The position numbers and the translations under genes were made by a program. A stretch of 41,480 bases of DNA from Cercozoa sp. M6MM (Eukaryota > Protista > Endomyxa: Ascetosporea), in assembly GCA_040357565.1 (NCBI GenBank), contig JBDODJ010000099.1; one strand, 5' to 3'. Shown here piece by piece: positions 31,501 to 41,480 of this stretch. Under the pieces are notes generated by a model. The model was not told where the DNA came from, did not search any database, and worked only from the letters and a program-made list of their open reading frames with translations. How positions within the stretch are numbered: the first letter of the stretch is position 1; the number at the start of each line of letters is the position of its first letter.

Positions 31501-32566
31501 CAACGAGGCCGTGAGTTTCTCACCCCCGACCCCCTTACCCCGACCCCCTTACCCCCTCCCGGTGTCTGCGCAGAACGTGAAGGAGGTGCTACAGATGGAG
31601 CGACTCGAGAAGCAGCTGCAGCGAGCCGAAATGGAGGCTCTCAAGGCGCAGAACATGATCGAACACAAGGTGCATTTCTCTTGTGTTTTTGTTGTTGTTG
31701 TTTCTGTGTGAAAAACAACAACATGTACTCTCGTGACATGTGTAGGACGAGATTCTTTCGCGTCCCAAACGCACCTGGTTCCAGAATGCCAAGGAGATCC
31801 GCGAGGACAAACAGGTACCAGAGGGGTAAAGGGGGATAAGGGGTAAAGGAGGGTAAAACACTGTACCAACGCAGAAGCGCCGCGACTCTCGCCACGTGAC
31901 CGAAAGCGTCGCCTCGGAAGTCGCCGGACTGACCGCCAAAAGCACCGGCACCTCGCGGCCGTCCAAGCGACCCGAGCAAGACGCCGGTGAGTTTTACCCT
32001 CCCCCATGTTACCCTCCCCATGTACCTCCCTGTTACCGACAACTATGGGCGCAGACAAGTACTCGTACAAGGAGCTGTGGCAGCGCGAGGCGCGTGACAT
32101 TGCCTTCCTGGCACCCGAGAAAAGCAAGAAGCCGAAGCGACCGCGTGTCGATGTCGAGGCTGCCTTGGACGCCGAGTTCGATCCAGGTACTGCCTTACCC
32201 TCCCCCCTCCCCCCAGGGTTAACAAAAGGAAGTGCATGTGTCGTAGCCACTGCCGAACCGGCCAGCAAGCGTTTCCAGCGAGCCGAAAGAAACCGCTTCG
32301 ACAACAAAAAGACGCGAAACGTCGAAGCTCTCGACGAGGTAGAAGAGCCTTCTCCCGCTGTATGCTCCCCTACCCCCCGGAGTACAGGACGAAGTGCTGC
32401 GGTTCGATGCGGCCGAACTGGCGCAGATCGCGAAGCGTGCGCGACAGTGCGTTTCTGCTTGTGTCTGTGTGACTGTGTGGACGATCCCTTCATCTTGTGC
32501 CTACGCAGGAAGCAGAAGGGAAGCGGTGCTTTCAAGAGCAAGAAGCGCTACCGACGACGCAAGTAG
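28599..32566 (+). CDS. DDX27: DEAD-box RNA helicase DDX27/Drs1 (60S biogenesis)
   Basis: Q motif [63 protein letters not shown]; family-specific [22 protein letters not shown] and terminal [11 protein letters not shown]. Confidence 0.95.
29759..29839. repeat. TG/TA-rich tandem repeat in a DDX27 intron
   Basis: tgtatatttgtgtatgtgtctatgtatgtg occurs twice, with a partial copy between. Confidence 0.8.
31221..31349 (+). repeat. Intron filled with (CCCCTTTA/CCCCTTTG)n telomere-like repeat
   Basis: GT..AG intron between RAG and LRGK of DDX27, consisting almost wholly of ccccttta/cccctttg units. Confidence 0.9.
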
Positions 32567-33061
32567 ATTTAAGAGCAAGGATCGCTTCAGTTTTAAATTC
32601 GTTTCAGTTGGTTGTTACCGTACGGCATAGCGTATGGTTATGAAGGATTTTATTTTGCTCGCTATCTCCTGCATTACCGTTACATACTGAGACTTCTACC
32701 TTGCATAGTCAAGTGTTGGTTGTGCAGACCTCCTTAGCTCGGGTCAAGCTTTCTACAGCTCGCGCACTTTGACTGCAGGTACCTCTGATCCAGCTTACTT
32801 CTACGGAGCTTCGTCCCTTCGCACCCGATACGTTCCGCCGTGATGATGCCTGGGCTGATTTAATTGACTTCAATAAAGCGTCCAAGCTTTCGACGAATTG
32901 ATCGAATATCTTATACGGTACGATACGATATTCGTTTCGGTTCCAGGGCGGTCGGGTTCCATTACCGTACGATGGTGTTTAAGCGCTGCGAAATGCAACG
33001 ATTGAATACTGTAAACGAAATTATCGTAAAGGGCGTCGCGTCGTATATTGTGCGGTCGAGC

Positions 33062-36000
33062 TCAATTAAAATTGCTGTCGCTTCGGCTGTACTCGTTCTG
33101 CGACGTTTGGTGCTGCTTCTGCTGTTGCTGCGTCAAGATCGATTGCTGCAGGAACATGCGGCGCAGTCGCACTGGCAAGTGCACAATGCGCGGCATTGCT
33201 TGCGACTAATTTACAATCCACAAGGGTTGTGCAGAAAACGAATCCAAGCTGAGGTGTCAGGTGCTCCAAGAACTAATGTTATACCAGCCAGCCGAGGACG
33301 TGTGCGCCTTTAATGCGCACTGTGTACTTCTATGCAAGCAGAGGAAATAGCGACAATGCACATGAAGACAGCAGGAATGTGTGTGCCGCACCTGATCGCT
33401 GTGACGCTCGTAGTCGGAATTTCGCAACGAAAACAGGGACGACAGGTGCGTGTCTCCTTCTCTGCTCAAAGTAAACGACATAAATGTCCTCACAAGACAT
33501 TTTCCAACCCTGTTTATGACATATGATCCTACTTGACTCTGTCGAGACAACTGCGAATGTCAATATCCTGCTCGTCAGTTTGCACATCATAGCTCACGTT
33601 GCGGGCCACCTGTGCATCATCCAAAACCTCGTGTGAATGAAGGTTGCCAGAGTGTAAAAGCTTACCAAGAGTGCAACTTTGTAGGTCGACAAAAGCGGTT
33701 CGATTGAGAGGCTGCGAAGCACTTGCAGTTCCTACAGCCAGTGTTTATGCGTGTGTTTGTGTGTGTGTGCGTATGTTTGAGTGTGTGTGTTTGTGTGTGG
33801 GGGTACAGTAGCATCGCCTGCTGCAAGCACCAGCTGCTGTTGCAACACTACGCAAACCCAAAGCAAACAGGTCTTAGGTCTTTTCTTGCTAGAAACGCAA
33901 TGTAGCTGTACTACCTTCATACTCGGCACCATCATCTTCTTCTTGCGGATCGTGCTGAACAGACCAAAGCGAGATAAAGCAGACAGGGCTGTACAGGTAA
34001 AAAAGGTCAAAAGTCAGTTTACATGAATCGTGTCCAGCTGCTGCAGTAGCCACTCTGCTGCCGAGTCACCATCTTCGCCACTGTCGTGCCCACGCTCTAG
34101 CTGTTTTCGCAAATACGCATCCCTTCTGTGCACAGTTGGCACACAGGAGTAGGGATCCCCGCGCATAAGAATTTTTAAAAAAAACTGGAGTTTACAAGTC
34201 ATCCGTAAGTGTGTCGACACGAAGTCCATTTGCGATCGTATCCAATCTTCAATATCCATTATTTGTTAACGCATTGGGCCAAGGCAGAAGGTTCGAACGC
34301 AGATAATTTACAGTGACACATCGAACCACGAACGCGAAATGTCGACCTAAGGAAAACATGGGAAATGGAGAATCGGGTGGTAAAAGGGAAGCGGCAAATG
34401 GTATTTTACCCGCATCACCTCCATCTGCACGGTGATTTTGAGTTTCTGGATGTTCTGCACCACAGGAGGCAGCTCATGCACAGGAGGCGGTGGTGTGATC
34501 AATGGCGCGTAGGAAGCGCGGTAGCCACTGATCACCAACAGATATAATTTCAGATAATTTATCGCACTGGAGCATGGATAGGTACGGCGGTGCGTTGAAG
34601 AACGGAAGGGCAGGCGGCGGATTGAAGCCTCCTGACATCGCAGCGGGAGCAGGAAAGCGAAACGTGTGTTGCCTCGGAAGGTTTCCTGCTGAGCACCGCA
34701 CTCATACAGTAAACACGCCAACTTGCAGAGGTAGATTTACACAGCAAGGTACCCAAGTCAGGAGCAAACTGGTAGTTGCCGTAGCTGTTCCTCGGGTTAT
34801 TGTTGACAATATTGTTGGCGCCGCTGTTGGTGTTGTTGGCATCGCTGACGCTGATATTAGACAGTGTGAACTGCACCTGCTGCCACTCGGCAGTCTTGTT
34901 AAAGTACTGCCGCAGACGGTTCAGATGTTCCGCCCACGCTTGTTCCACCTTGGCCATCTGCGCACATATTTGTACGGAACGGTCGATTCAACGCACATCT
35001 TTTAAGCAATGTGCATGTCCCCTTTACGCACCTCATTGATAATCTCGGCCATGCGAGTTTTCACTGCCACGAATGCCTACACCACACATACGCGTGTGCT
35101 CAGGGGTGTACTTGAAAATTCAAATTTACTTCTCGAATCTCGTCGGAAGCGTACTCCAGCGCTCTTGCTGCCACCTTAACGTTGAGGATTCTCTGCGCAA
35201 TTGACAGTAGATTTCTCACTTGCATCCACACAATCAGGGGACAACTACCTCCATGCGTTTCACTGTGCTTTGCACCACAGAGTTACGCATTTGCTCCTCC
35301 TGGTATATTTTACAAACACACATCGGGTCGTATTTTTACGTCAAGCAATGTAGTACCTGCATGACGACACGCAGGTTTTCATACATCGTCTCGTCCATCT
35401 CTCTGCCTTCCACTGTGGCCACCAAAGAAATTCTCTCAGTATGCGTTATGGGTGACAACTGAAGGCAAAGGGATACCAAAATTCTCTTGAAACAATTCGA
35501 GATGCATGATGGGAACCAAGTCGTGCCAGAACACGTCCTTGTGTTCATCCTTTGTTTACAAATGTGGTTATGAGTCAATGTGTATTTACGTGCGTACAAA
35601 CCAAAAAGTACTGAATCTAAATTTACCAAGTATTCGCAGGCTTTGATAATCTCGTTCAACGAGATTACAAATTCCATCTGTATTTTCAAGGTAGGATTGC
35701 ATTATTTACTTGTAAGGTACTGAAAAAAGATTAGTTTTACATGGTGTGTTGCACGTAAAGTAGCGCGAAGTGCCTGAAGGATCACGGTGTCCGCTGCCTT
35801 CTTCTCCATTTTCGGACCTTGTGTTGTTGTTCCGGGGCCGGCTAATCCCGGAAAGATAACGCAAACTCGCAGACACCTTTTCAGAATCAAGAAAGTTACC
35901 TGATCCCAGCAAAGGAGGGCGAGCAGCTCGTTCAATCTCTTTCTCTGCCTGCGCATACACAGTTGTGAGTGACCTTAGGTGACAACACAAGCGACAAACA

Positions 36001-37716
36001 ACGGAATCACCTGAACGTCGATGTTCATCGTGACGCGTGCAAGTTTCGACGAGACGTTCTGGAGCGCTTGTGCATCTCGTTGCAACTAAAAAAGTGCACA
36101 AAAATCTTGGGTCAACGTGCCAATATAAATGCAATCGTAAAGCTAGGTGCCACAACCGAAGCAAATGTACGCACTGCTCGGCCATCTCGCGCGTGATGTC
36201 GACAAACGAAATCAAGCGCTTGACTTGTGCCTTCCTCTGCTGTCGCAACATGTGTAACCATGTTTGCAGAGTCCGTGCCCTCGTGATTCTATGTATGTGA
36301 CGAACTTATGTGCGACACAACTCAACCACGAGGTCCATGCACCTCTTCTGCTTGTCTTCGAGGTAAAGTGCCCAGTCAGACGGCGTCATTGTCACAGGCA
36401 TGAACTGCAGGACGTCCAAAAAGTGTTGACTCATAATAGGTCTGTGGCTTTCTTCACTCAAAACACAGGATACTTGTGCAGCAGAGTCGACTGTAGGAAT
36501 GCTAACGAAGCGGAGAATAGACTTCGCTTCCAGAAGACTGCTGCAACTGATGCTCTAAGCAGACACAGGAGTTCTTCCATAAATATTTAAAAACGGCTGT
36601 GCATAGAGGGGTACCTCGCACATGTGCAGCATAGTCTCTGTCTCACGGCGGTTGCCATACACGGTCCACTGTCGAAAAGCTTCTTCCTCTGCCTCTGCTG
36701 TCGTTGTCTATTAAGCATATCAATTGCCTGGCTTGTGATCCTCAAGTAAGAGTCTGGCCGAGTTCGGATACCTCTCCCGATAAACGACTCTCACGAGCGG
36801 CATGATACCGATTGCGGTAAAGAGTGTACTGTCCAGGAAAACAAACGTTTTGTCCAAAATGAACTGACCAAAGTTGAAAGGAATCAAACGGCTTCGAGGC
36901 GAGTCATTGGAATTTGTGATTCCGGCAGGGTTGATGGTAGTTCTGCGAGGTCTGAAAGCCACTGGCGCGCTTGCTGCAGAGAGAGTTGATGACTGGGTAA
37001 GGGGGAGCAAGCATATTTCATACCTGAAGCCGGGTGGCACGCTCGTCGGTGAGTTTTCTCGGCGCAACTGAGTGCAAGACCGTTCGGTACTAAATTTGTG
37101 ACGCAGCAAAAGGCGATAGGAAAATGTGGAAAGCTGAGGTGAAGAAATTGATACAGCATCGCTCAGTCGACGGCCAGATGGCCAGGCAGTTGCGTTGAGC
37201 GGTAGCAAACCCTCGTCGGCGAGTCTGGCTTCACTCTACACATTTCCGTCAGCAGCGCCAATCGAAAAGAAACTCTCGGGAAAATCGTGACGTGGACCCC
37301 ATGTTTGTAAATTATACCTCTTGGACGTTTAGCGGCTTTCGCACACTCAATGTGTCGTACACGTAATCATCCACATTTAGCTGCAGCACAGGCGACTCGA
37401 TTTGGAGCGACAGCTGTAAAATACAGATTCACCTTGAAGCTTCTCCGGACCGGTCAATGAAAAGGAGAGAGGACACCTTTTCCATACCGACGGTGTTCGT
37501 GCCAAACACCACCTTTTTGAGAGCTGCATGAAGAGCATCGACTGGCGAGTCGTAAGTTTCCTCCGACTTCGAGCTCTCTTCAGTGTCCTGTTGCTGTTGT
37601 TGTTGTTGTTGCGGCAACTGCACGTTCTGCCCTTCTTGCACTGGAATCACTTGGGGAGGCGGGTTGAGATGCTGCTGCTGTTCCTGCTCTGCCTTGTGCT
37701 TCTTGCGCCGAAACAT
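33062..37716 (-). CDS. Uncharacterised protein 'A', paralogue of the divergently transcribed gene at 38422
   Basis: ATG at 37716, Gln-rich N-terminus. Spliced: LSLQIESPVLQLNVDDYVYD...KPLNVQESEARLAD...SGRRLSDAYRTVLHSVAP...QARQWL...TRLEAYTLYRNRY...FRQWTVYGNR...LLEAKSILRF...FMPVTMTPSDWA...WQQVQFTLS...ITVQMEVMRVDISRSWFDVSL. 3' end is less certain. Confidence 0.75.
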
Positions 37717-38421
37717 TGCTCAAAAGCAAAACCGCCACGCTCCGGGTGCTCACAAGAAATCGGCAGAACCCAGCTAGGAGCACAGGCAGCAAAAACTCCG
37801 TGCTTGACAACCAGCTTCCCTTTGGCGACACCCGATTTGTGGTATCTATTACTTTCTGATCGCCCGAATCAGCGACTTACGTTTTTTCTGATCGCTTGCT
37901 TGCAGTCACAGATCGATCAGTAATTGACGGTTCGTGGCTGCAGCTGACTGACTGACTACTCAATCCCAATCTTGATACAAGCACGCGTGCTCCCGCCAAG
38001 AGAAACCTTTGACTTGTATTTCTTGCTTTTGCATTTAGCGTCTCCAAGCGTACAAGGTATACATACCAGTTGCTTTGCAGTTCCGCACGAGTTACCCCAG
38101 CTTTGCGTTTGCTGCTTGTCTTTGCAAAGGTATTGCGCTTGTGCTTTTGCTAAAGGTCTCTGCTATTATGTGTTGCGTCATTGGTTTCGGTGTGTTTTTT
38201 GCGTCATTGGTTTCGGTGTGTTTTTGCAGCGTTTTTGCACCAACTTTATCCCCAGGGTGAATTTTTGTGCAAAAGTGTCTTTGCGCGTGTTTTTGCACGT
38301 GTTTTTGCACGTGTTTTTGCACGAAGCGGAAATTTAACGTGTAGGGAAACGCCTTTTAACCTGATCCATTGTTGTCTCATCACGAGCGAAAAGAACCACT
38401 GACTCTTCACCCGAAGCAAAG
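37717..38421. promoter_or_regulatory. Putative bidirectional promoter with tandem motif arrays
   Basis: Lies between two divergent ATGs. 26-bp unit x2 (38173-38224) containing TGCGTCATTGG; 12-bp unit TTGCACGTGTTT x~3.5 (38281-38323). Confidence 0.55.
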
Positions 38422-40627
38422 ATGTCCTCGAGCGCCCAGCTGGCCGAGCAGTAGCTTTATTATTTTTCCAGTTCCAGTGATTCCAACGACACTGATTTGC
38501 TATCCGAAGGAACGCCCAGAAGCAGAACGCTGCTCAGAAAGGCTCGCACGTTGCAGCCAAGCAGTTCTCCAGCATCATTCTGGTACCTTGCTGGATTTGT
38601 CTTCAGTTGCAGAGTTCATGTTTCCTCTTTTTTGCAGCAACAAATCTTCAAGGGCAACGTTCCCGACAGCGTCTCCGTGCAGTGTGAGATCCCCGGTCGA
38701 ATGCTGACTCCGACTGGTACAACACTCCCGGATAACGTTGTCCACACACACCAACTCTTGTGCAATTTAGACTACGAGTTCGACCTCGGAAACTCCGGTG
38801 TTGGCGCCAACTTTGCCAAGCCGGTGAACGTGCGTCTAAACGAGGCTCGCCTGGCTGATCGCATCTTTGACGTAATTTTCGACCTGCTACAACGACAAGG
38901 GGGAGGGGGTATATTTATCGAATTTGTACTTTAGACCTCGACGGACTCGATTGCGGGTGACACTGGCCGCACTGTCTCGGACTCCTACGTGGCAGCACTG
39001 AACTCGTTCGCGCCGACCCTGCCGGTAACACCGACTCAGGTTGATTTGATGAACCGACTGATGCTTCCTCGATGTTTGCAGTCGGACGAGCGCGGTCGCC
39101 TGGTGCAGGCCGCTCGTGCGTGGCTGGCCCAGAAGGCGATCAAGGGCGCCAAGGCCACCGACATGGAGGACTTCAAGCGCGCTCTCGGCGAGGATGACTT
39201 TGAGGAGAAGAGCGACGACGTCGAGTACATCCTCGGCGACGATGGCAAGCCGCTGTCGCGTGTTGAGAACTACGCCAAGGTAGCCATCTGTCTCACTGTG
39301 CTGTAATGTAAATTCACCTTTGTGTTCGGTAGTACCGCATGATGTACGCGACGGAGCTGCAGTCGCTGCGCGTGAAGCAACTTGCGAAGAAACAGGAGTT
39401 GTCGGCCGTGGATTACCTCGAGTGGTGGCGCCAAGAGGGCTCTGCCATGCGCATGCAGCTTGATGCGGTATATTCTCTGACCACCAAGCCGCTTCCTGCA
39501 AAACAACGCTAACGACGCTAACTTTTTGACTCCTATTAACTCCTAGGTCTACGATCGCTGGCTGATTGACGGTGACAAGGCTCGTTGCGAGTACGCCATT
39601 AGTACGCTTTCGTCATATTTTGCTTTCTAGTCTTCTTTGATGACGTGCGCGTTCTGTGCAGCCCTTGCTGACTTTGACATGCCGGGTCAGCAGCTCGAGG
39701 AGACTAAGTCGACTCTTCGGTACCTTTTCTGTGTTGTGCGTGTTGTTGTTGCGATGCATGCGTGTTTGTAGCTTCATCCAGGAGCTTAGCGAGGACGGCG
39801 CTCGCTTCTTCCCTGGTACGACTGAACACGAACCAGTCAGGCATTGTATTAATTTGTGTGCGTGAGCAGTGCGTCTCGATCCGTCGGACTGGGGCAACAG
39901 CCTGCGCGACTTCACCGATCCCGAATCCATCTCGCAGCAGATTGTGTATGTAGATACGAGAGTGCCTGTATCTTTGCGTGTGTCACACTTAGAACTTGGT
40001 CGTTTGCAGGATGATCCAGAAGCAAGAAGACGCATTGAACCTCAAGCTGGTCGACCTCAACCAGGTACAACATGCGACTCGGCCTGCATCCACTTGTTGA
40101 TGCTATGATATGTGTTTCAAACGCAGCAACTGGTCTACATGAGCGAAGATATGGAAGGTGTGTCGGCAGAAGCTGCCAAGCTGTCCGCAGCATCCGCGGC
40201 GATGCAGCAGGCGTCGATGGAAGTGGTAGGCGCGCACTTTTGTCCGATGTTGTCCACCACGTAAGTCATTCCCTTTGTGTGTAATGGCGTAGTCGAGCAA
40301 GGTGAACGCTGCCGCTGCCGCAGGCTTCGATTCTCTTGTCGGCGCCGTTGGAGAGGTAGAATAGGATGCTGCCTGCGCGGAAACGGGGTAGGAAGTAAAG
40401 GAAACGCTTGTGCGTAGGGTCTCAAGTTCGCGGCCAACCCGGCCAAGACGCCCGCCAGTGCTGGTGATCTCGTCAAGGGTATCGCCACGGCCATCAATGG
40501 CAGCGAGAAGGCGCAAGACGAGCTGTCGCAGGCGGCCATGGACCTTTGCAACAAGCAGGCCGAGTACCTCAAGTCGCTCTCGTCCGAACAGGACCGCAAG
40601 GTGATGCAGCAGAAGATTCGGTACCAA

Positions 40628-40685
<58 letters not shown>

Positions 40686-41405
40686 TCTCTCTCTGGCATG
40701 TATCACATCTGCACAGAGACGTGACAACGGAGATTGCGCGCGCCAAGACGCAGCTGTCGCAGCTCGCGTCGTCTCGCCAGCGCAAGCTGACTGAGTACGA
40801 GCAGGCCAAGCAGGCCAAGGAGGACCGCGATGAAGCGCGTGCGAAGGCGGGCGACGACGCCGAGCCTCCGCAGGCCGCCAACGACATGTGGACCGACATC
40901 AACTTCACCTTCTCCTTCAGTACGTGCTTTCCCGCAACTGCTACTTGGGCTCTACCTTACGCATGCGCGTGTCACAGGCGCAACGTCGTCGACCAATTCG
41001 TCCTCGGCGTCGGCTTCATCGTCGTCCTCGCGCGTCCGTGGCTGGTTCTACTCCAAGACCAAGAGCAAGTCGGAACAGGAGGCCGCCGTACCACTCCATT
41101 TCCTCATCATTCCCAGGAAGGGATGTATTTTTACATCCAAATTGTGTGTGTGTGTGTTTGTGTGGGTACAGAGCCATTCGGCGAGTGCAGAGCAAACGTA
41201 CGAAGTCGCGGTGTCGATGCGCGTGATGAAGGTCAACATCACTCGTGTAAGTTGTCTCCCTGCATCAGCGTACACACTGTGCGACTTGCTTGACTTGCTT
41301 GGACTTTACTTGGGACATAGGGTTGGCTCGACATGTCGCTTCTGCAGCAAGCGACATCTTTTGAGTGGGTTGCCGGTCCAGATGCCAAGAAGCGCGTCTC
41401 CTACG
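38422..41405 (+). CDS. Uncharacterised protein 'B' (coiled coil plus Ser/Thr-rich hairpin), 3' truncated by the window edge
   Basis: Spliced: SVQCEIPGRMLTPTDYEFD...KPVNVRLNEARLAD...TGRTVSDSYVAALNSFAP...AARAWL...SRVENYAKYRMMY...YDRWLIDGDK...LEETKSTLRF...FFPVRLDPSDWG...WTDINFTFS...VAVSMRVMKVNITRGWLDMSLL. Strongly C/G-ending codons. Confidence 0.85.
40631..40693. repeat. (CT)n microsatellite in an intron of gene B
   Basis: Long CT run seen directly. Confidence 0.9.
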
Positions 41406-41432
41406 GTACCCTCGTTACAACTCACTTGTCGA

Positions 41433-41443
41433 CGCGCGCGCGC

Positions 41444-41480
<37 letters not shown>
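41433..41480. repeat. (CG)n(TG)n microsatellite in an intron, at the window end
   Basis: Alternating purine-pyrimidine tract seen directly. Confidence 0.9.

Follow-up and report, generated by a model that had tools for sequence, protein, structure and literature searches.

Two head-to-head genes of the amoeba Lemnamoeba sinaloensis are probably ancient inverted duplicates from an unnamed protein family with members in gut Clostridia

The window analyzed here is an entire 41,480-bp contig (JBDODJ010000099.1) from the initial assembly for "Cercozoa sp. M6MM", a marine rhizarian (cercozoan) amoeba that is now called Lemnamoeba sinaloensis (strain M6MM) (PMC13746701). At its right end lie two genes in head-to-head orientation, gene A on the minus strand and gene B on the plus strand, with 705 bp between their start codons. 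In the reading that we favor, with a probability of about 0.7, A and B are the products of an ancient inverted duplication of one gene and represent an unnamed family of proteins of ~740–810 residues. The genome is compact and intron-rich, contains 6% intergenic DNA, and abounds in AC/GT microsatellites (PMC13746701); because of these introns and microsatellites, the open reading frame track of the locus is fragmented, and both the contig and gene B end at a (GT)n run.

A preliminary description of this DNA had proposed that A and B are deeply diverged paralogues that align block by block in the same order, that introns fragment both genes, and that the two ATGs are ~700 bp apart, all of which agrees with what is observed. 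The nine block pairs quoted in that description are all present and collinear, with ~71 of 128 positions identical by our own count, A is divided into 29 exons and B into 19 within the window, and exon-chain, regional, and bacterial-profile tests of the relationship are all positive. The signal resides in the order of the matches, with no single exon significant, so that chain-level statistics were needed. Tblastn of A fragments against B detected none of the quoted blocks, phmmer of B against six-frame fragments gave a best single-fragment E value of 1.2, which is not significant, and a whole-genome search with B did not report A.

In the chain test, the best local (Smith–Waterman) match of each A exon to B was taken and collinearity was enforced, with residue-shuffled exons serving as the control. 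The A–B exon chain scores 612–626 as compared with 453–492 ± 12–14 for shuffled exons (z of 10.9–12.9), a level that was reached by none of 300 and none of 150 shuffles, and the excess vanishes when the order of the A exons is reversed. A second test is free of any gene model: all stop-to-stop fragments on the minus strand of 33000–37800 were chained to B, and 62 segments of 4.8 kb from elsewhere in the contig, taken from either strand, served as controls. The resulting chain exceeds all 62 control regions at link costs of 15–25 (z of 5.8–7.1), and the opposite strand of 33000–37800 falls within the control range. By these sequence comparisons, A and B are confirmed as real, very old collinear duplicates.

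No named domain had been assigned to either protein, and this still stands: searches of Pfam, NCBIfam, PADLOC, and PDB sequences were empty or returned coiled-coil noise only. HMMER with one B exon against 1.84 billion representatives retrieved only B itself and a repeat protein, and word-index protein searches returned only B. Metagenome scans and a viral-contig scan gave no further family members, and tblastn against plasmids and phages found no copy. Homologues were found with a degenerate motif around the sequence PSDW, derived from a two-row alignment of B and the best exon of A (exon 9) and scanned over bacterial and archaeal genomes, which matched in five uncultured Clostridia genomes from the rabbit gut. 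The Clostridia homologues are intron-free, encode 739–785 amino acids, and lie on long contigs amid ordinary bacterial genes; they are unnamed in every source consulted. When B is compared with one of them by BLASTP, the score is 73.6 bits (E of 1e-17, 24% identity) over 599 collinear residues (B residues 53–610), and the identity of the Clostridia proteins to B is 22–24% overall. An eight-row family alignment contains ~70 invariant columns that are spread along its length.

Gene A belongs with these proteins as well. When a profile was built from seven bacterial proteins only, the three best matches among 1652 six-frame fragments of the rest of the window were, in order of rank, exons 9, 2, and 23 of A, which are collinear; the A exon chain against a bacterial protein gives a z of 9.8. 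Judged by collinear full-length sequence similarity and common motifs, A and B are both members of one family with the Clostridia proteins. The distance of A from B is almost as large as its distance from the bacterial proteins. In several of the N-terminal blocks, A and B resemble each other more than they do the bacterial sequences, consistent with an old duplication within the eukaryotic lineage. In the ESM Atlas, B lies near unnamed clusters of 590–734 amino acids with bacterial and fungal members (0.90–0.94), a lead that the Clostridia homologues make credible for bacteria.

Similar to A and B, the Clostridia proteins are collinear over nearly their whole length, carry short motifs such as PSDW, YLEW, and KRVSY, and show the same order of an N-terminal region, a helical hairpin, and a strand-rich C terminus, the loops being Ser-rich as in B. 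The main differences between the Clostridia proteins and A or B are that the former lack introns, occur as single, unpaired copies, and have an acidic disordered N terminus. The C-terminal domain of the family comprises ~150 residues after KRVSY. In B, this domain would lie beyond the end of the contig, and in A, it may be represented by exons 26–29, which match one bacterial clade with a z of 6–7 but match neither the G884 protein nor a C-terminal profile among its top hits.

The model of gene A was built by hand from the minus-strand sequence, and every comparison that involves A was made exon by exon or from window coordinates. Its 2424 coding bases are a multiple of three with consistent phases, and all 28 introns are of the GT-AG type, with lengths of 47–108 nt except in one case, a 413-nt intron containing an AC/GT repeat (Table 1). 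Exons 1–23 are firm. Exons 24–25 were placed from the splice sites and reading frame together with a short stretch of similarity to B; relative to B and the bacterial proteins, these two exons (34023–34246) amount to an apparent insertion of ~35–50 residues between the conserved strand block and a KRVSY-like motif. Exons 26–29 are moderately supported by their match to the bacterial C terminus, with collinear matches at 33535–33416 and 33323–33288 (bacterial residues 627–667 and 710–721). This comparison led to a revision of the 3′ end of A, and the 3′ end first chosen (exon 33954–33892) was dropped. The revised exons remain open as far as the stop at 33062, the position that the preliminary description gives as its left boundary. 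Against one bacterial clade, the chain of C-terminal A exons gives a z of 6.1–6.9 with respect to shuffles, none of 500 of which scores as high; in a regional control, 0–6 of 184 regions do so.

The exons of B were obtained by mapping the NCBI protein back to the window and reading the boundaries from the sequence. The last intron of B runs off the contig within the (GT)n run, such that coding sequence in the window ends at 41405, and, judged from the bacterial homologues, ~150 codons should lie beyond the contig end. The missing 3′ exons were searched for in the assembly and were not found; a third family copy was likewise not found in the assembly with the queries used. That a microsatellite ends the contig inside a B intron suggests that the old assembly probably broke at such repeats. 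Dinucleotide microsatellites, including (CT)32 and several (GT)n/(AC)n runs, are located within introns of A and B at 33740–33799, 40631–40694, 41143–41164, and 41446–41480. In the alignable blocks, none of the 28 intron positions of A is common to the 18 of B in the window, and there are three near misses, which are 3, 3, and 5 codons apart (around YxxYR, PSDW, and the strand blocks). The lack of common positions suggests that, since the duplication, many introns have been gained or have shifted position.

The structure models of the family are poor, with a predicted local distance difference test score (pLDDT) of 47.5 for the AlphaFold model of B and 54.1 for that of a bacterial protein modeled from a 14-row alignment. 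Both models agree on a layout in which a mixed N-terminal region is followed by a central pair of very long helices and by C-terminal strands between low-complexity loops. Three parts can be distinguished in the family: an N-terminal region, conserved and ~250 residues long; a ~200-residue central region, for which helices are predicted in both B and the bacterial protein and which takes the form of a long antiparallel hairpin in the bacterial model (residues ~308–513); and a strand-rich C-terminal region in which the strands are separated by low-complexity loops, Ser-rich in B and the bacterial proteins and Asn/Pro-rich in A. Foldseek and VIA fold searches returned generic long helical hairpins only, all below the tool's own level of meaning for helical proteins, and the VIA matches are confined to residues 289–513 of the bacterial model. 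The C-terminal part of that model has a pLDDT mostly below 70 and is barely covered by VIA; with both models poor, the fold results for the N- and C-terminal regions are tentative. By eye, no obvious signal peptide or long hydrophobic stretch is seen in A, B, or the bacterial proteins. With reading frames that are intact in both genes, A and B would be functional cytosolic proteins.

The distribution of the family in bacteria is narrow. Among relatives of the first bacterial genome, 7 of 151 contain a member, with mutual identities of 59–100%. In an evenly spread sample of 401 genomes of the class, the family occurs only in the center genome itself (1/401), and in a phylum sample of 401 genomes there are five matches, of which only two are real family members. 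The one copy in the phylum sample beyond those already named is divergent and frameshifted and lies on a 2.9-kb contig of genome G884. This most divergent homologue (G884:C168:1-2867) fills its contig with two overlapping frames on the minus strand, 1086–2855 and 538–1209, and is either a gene with a frameshift or the product of misassembly; the membership of so short a contig in the bacterial bin is uncertain. Each of the seven Clostridia genomes with a close homologue has a single copy, as does G884.

There is considerable variability in the genes that flank the bacterial homologues. The neighbors are purD and genes for a deaminase, a methyltransferase, a NUDIX protein, an amidase, and a GNAT protein in one group, spoIIE and metA in a second, and an esterase gene and carAB in a third. 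Genes of sporulation or cell-wall type adjoin the family gene in two of these contexts, namely spoIIE (L032:2635-4935) and a gene for a 172-residue Amidase_3 protein (L012:7090-7608). A link to sporulation was considered and rejected, as the spoIIE/amidase adjacency is not conserved in the third context. A check set beforehand was whether homologues in other genomes also occur as adjacent pairs: in the seven Clostridia genomes and in G884 they are unpaired, and the neighbors are not conserved. The homologues being single and without conserved neighbors, pairing is not a trait of the family, and a partner subunit is not required by it.

In the favored reading, the pair would have arisen when one ancestral gene underwent an inverted duplication that left A and B head-to-head. 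The 705-bp spacer would drive both genes, as the layout suggests. By analogy with other long-hairpin proteins, A and B probably form oligomers through their helical stalks, each by itself or the two together. We take the adjacency of A and B to be left over from the duplication and not to signal a two-part machine. About one quarter of neighboring gene pairs in any genome are head-to-head by chance, and with 6% intergenic DNA in this genome, the orientation is unremarkable.

Several points weigh against this account or some part of it. The exon model of A, co-expression, and a shared promoter are all read from sequence and layout rather than from RNA. The last exons of A are moderately supported: a comparison with the divergent G884 protein shows no signal, and a profile scan restricted to the C terminus does not place these exons among its best matches. 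The three-part layout derives from secondary-structure prediction, sequence pattern, and models of low confidence. Oligomerization is argued from analogy alone, with A–B heteromers being a reasonable guess. The cytosolic location of A and B is read by eye from their N termini rather than predicted by a localization tool. Finally, the patchy distribution across domains of life leaves room, as a minority reading, for a role related to conflict.

Alternatively, A and B could constitute an obligate structural heterodimer, as is the case for many paralogous helical-stalk proteins, and serve a housekeeping function (cytoskeleton, membrane traffic, or cyst formation) instead of one in conflict. The helical central regions of the two proteins are similar in length, both genes are intact, and their divergent orientation would favor balanced expression. 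However, the central region is the part least conserved between A and B (exon scores of 12–25), which argues against a co-evolved pairing surface without excluding one, and the presence of the family in so few of the sampled genomes of the class and the phylum is unlike that of housekeeping genes. We consider a heterodimer of this kind unlikely.

The preliminary description had favored a heteromeric toxin/defense or sensor-executor module, in which A and B would be two subunits of a pore-forming toxin, a defense module, or a sensor-executor pair, co-expressed from the spacer and active only together. This proposal draws on the head-to-head layout and the 705-bp spacer, on the long helical region and the strand segments with low-complexity loops in both proteins, and on the patchy occurrence of the family across bacteria and eukaryotes, a pattern often seen in conflict genes. 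The architecture is reminiscent of the XaxAB/YaxAB and tripartite Smh/Ahl α-pore-forming toxins of the ClyA superfamily, in which related subunits are encoded side by side, form long helical hairpins, and have no classical signal peptide. XaxB and SmhB are indeed among the weak Foldseek rows (E of 0.2–0.6, template modeling score below 0.25), which are not significant and were obtained with query models of low confidence; a colicin and bacterial gasdermins appear among the same non-significant leads (E of 0.2–0.7 for the set), the gasdermins at E values of 0.65–0.69 over 86–176 columns in a comparison that involves the low-confidence C-terminal part of the model. The nearest named clusters in the ESM Atlas, cytolysin and MACPF, are at 0.77–0.78, a level that the tool calls often due to chance.

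Unlike the ClyA-type toxins, the A/B family is twice as long, has extra N- and C-terminal regions, shows by eye no hydrophobic head segment, and is encoded by single genes in its bacterial members. No match to a Bacillus_HBL/ClyA-type Pfam domain was found in B or the bacterial homologues, nor was there a Pfam match to MACPF or Thiol_cytolysin at E values up to 10. The LXG domain (PF04740) of LXG type VII secretion toxins/WXG100 proteins is likewise not matched in B, in the bacterial homologues, or in the amoeba genome, with a Bacillus subtilis control positive. Among PADLOC defense models, only a coiled-coil-level match to LmuB was obtained (E of 8.6e-4, 16.6 bits). By eye, there is neither a hydrophobic nor a clearly amphipathic hairpin, and the Ser-rich loops appear too polar for a membrane hairpin. 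Similarity to head-to-head plant paired nucleotide-binding leucine-rich repeat receptors (NLRs) is confined to the layout of two related genes that diverge from a short spacer: no NB-ARC, LRR, TIR, or CC-NLR domain was detected, and there is no sign of a division into sensor and executor. With bacterial relatives unpaired, toxin and defense models unmatched, fold matches below the meaningful level, no secretion or membrane signal by eye, and an orientation expected for about a quarter of neighboring genes, the proposed module is unsupported, and we regard it as quite improbable.

A broader version, in which the family is a new membrane-active or conflict-related protein that moved between bacteria and microbial eukaryotes and in which the amoeba has a two-subunit form with A, its loops rewritten and an insertion present near its C terminus, regulating or complementing B, seems to us similarly doubtful; the ESM Atlas hints at fungal members as well. 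That one copy is a decaying pseudogene, the resemblance being a fading trace of the duplication, is highly improbable: an annotated A protein was not retrieved from protein collections and A has diverged loops, the 52-residue insertion in exons 24–25, and one unusually long intron, but both amoeba genes keep intact reading frames, A across 29 exons, with every junction of the GT-AG type and the frame unbroken, and the annotated B across 19, and A is as similar to bacteria as to B (z of 9.8 versus 10.9–12.9), which points to continued constraint.

The coordinates of the pair and related features are collected in Table 1. The two tandem repeats of the spacer (38173–38323) lie ~100–250 bp upstream of the start codon of B and are possible promoter elements. 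Just past the 3′ end of A, at 31549–32566, long overlapping open reading frames of 186 amino acids on the plus strand and 330 amino acids on the minus strand belong to a neighboring gene.

Table 1. Coordinates of genes A and B, the spacer between them, and homologous loci
Feature	Position	Strand	Remarks
Gene A	33062-37716	minus	Hand model, 29 exons, 808 codons; ATG at 37716
A exons 1-8 (high to low)	37716-37513, 37413-37318, 37235-37155, 37089-37024, 36973-36890, 36828-36772, 36707-36615, 36554-36474	minus	
A exons 9-16	36404-36343, 36234-36171, 36085-36011, 35948-35900, 35841-35741, 35677-35627, 35549-35477, 35412-35357	minus	
A exons 17-23	35299-35249, 35192-35130, 35076-35032, 34957-34753, 34688-34586, 34527-34410, 34346-34312	minus	
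A exons 24-29	34246-34196, 34125-34023, 33609-33586, 33538-33392, 33329-33285, 33205-33065	minus	Stop 33064-33062
A exon 2	37318-37413	minus	N-terminal conserved block; correctly placed in alignment with family
A exon 9	36343-36404	minus	Best-conserved block of family, contains PSDW; score 50 versus B, 53-56 versus bacterial proteins
A exon 23	34312-34346	minus	Conserved strand-like block near C-terminal region; score 37 versus B, 42-44 versus bacteria
A exons 26-28	33285-33609	minus	Probable diverged C-terminal domain of family
A intron of 413 nt	33610-34022	minus	Holds AC/GT microsatellite 33740-33799; length outlier versus 47-108 nt
Intergenic spacer	37717-38421		Both 5′ untranslated regions and presumed divergent promoter region; 705 bp between start codons
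Tandem repeat, 26-bp unit x2	38173-38225		In spacer upstream of B; Tandem Repeats Finder
Tandem repeat, 12-bp unit x4	38275-38323		In spacer upstream of B; Tandem Repeats Finder
Gene B	38422 to contig end (41480)	plus	NCBI MHM6MM_003342 / MES1910812.1, "partial", 612 amino acids, 19 exons in window
B exons 1-10	38422-38450, 38510-38582, 38638-38716, 38771-38871, 38935-39024, 39082-39279, 39333-39467, 39547-39601, 39662-39719, 39772-39815	plus	
B exons 11-19	39870-39945, 40010-40064, 40127-40225, 40293-40355, 40418-40620, 40717-40919, 40978-41087, 41172-41246, 41321-41405	plus	
Clostridia homologues	e.g. on CANQIP010000002.1, CANRKO010000003.1		Loci L012-L016, L023, L024

Considered as an old inverted duplication, the pair is an ordinary product of gene duplication, and the novelty lies in the family, whose members of ~750 residues are without Pfam, NCBIfam, or structural annotation. 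The family occurs in one marine cercozoan and in a narrow clade of Clostridia from the gut, is rare in both settings, and could merit a new family entry. Such a distribution may reflect an old gene transfer across domains of life; the 18–28 introns of the amoeba copies, none at a common position, indicate long residence. As this case illustrates, similarity that is scattered across many tiny exons is missed by standard searches and calls for chain-level statistics. A function, if found in the tractable, intron-free bacterial homologues, would be transferable to the amoeba pair.

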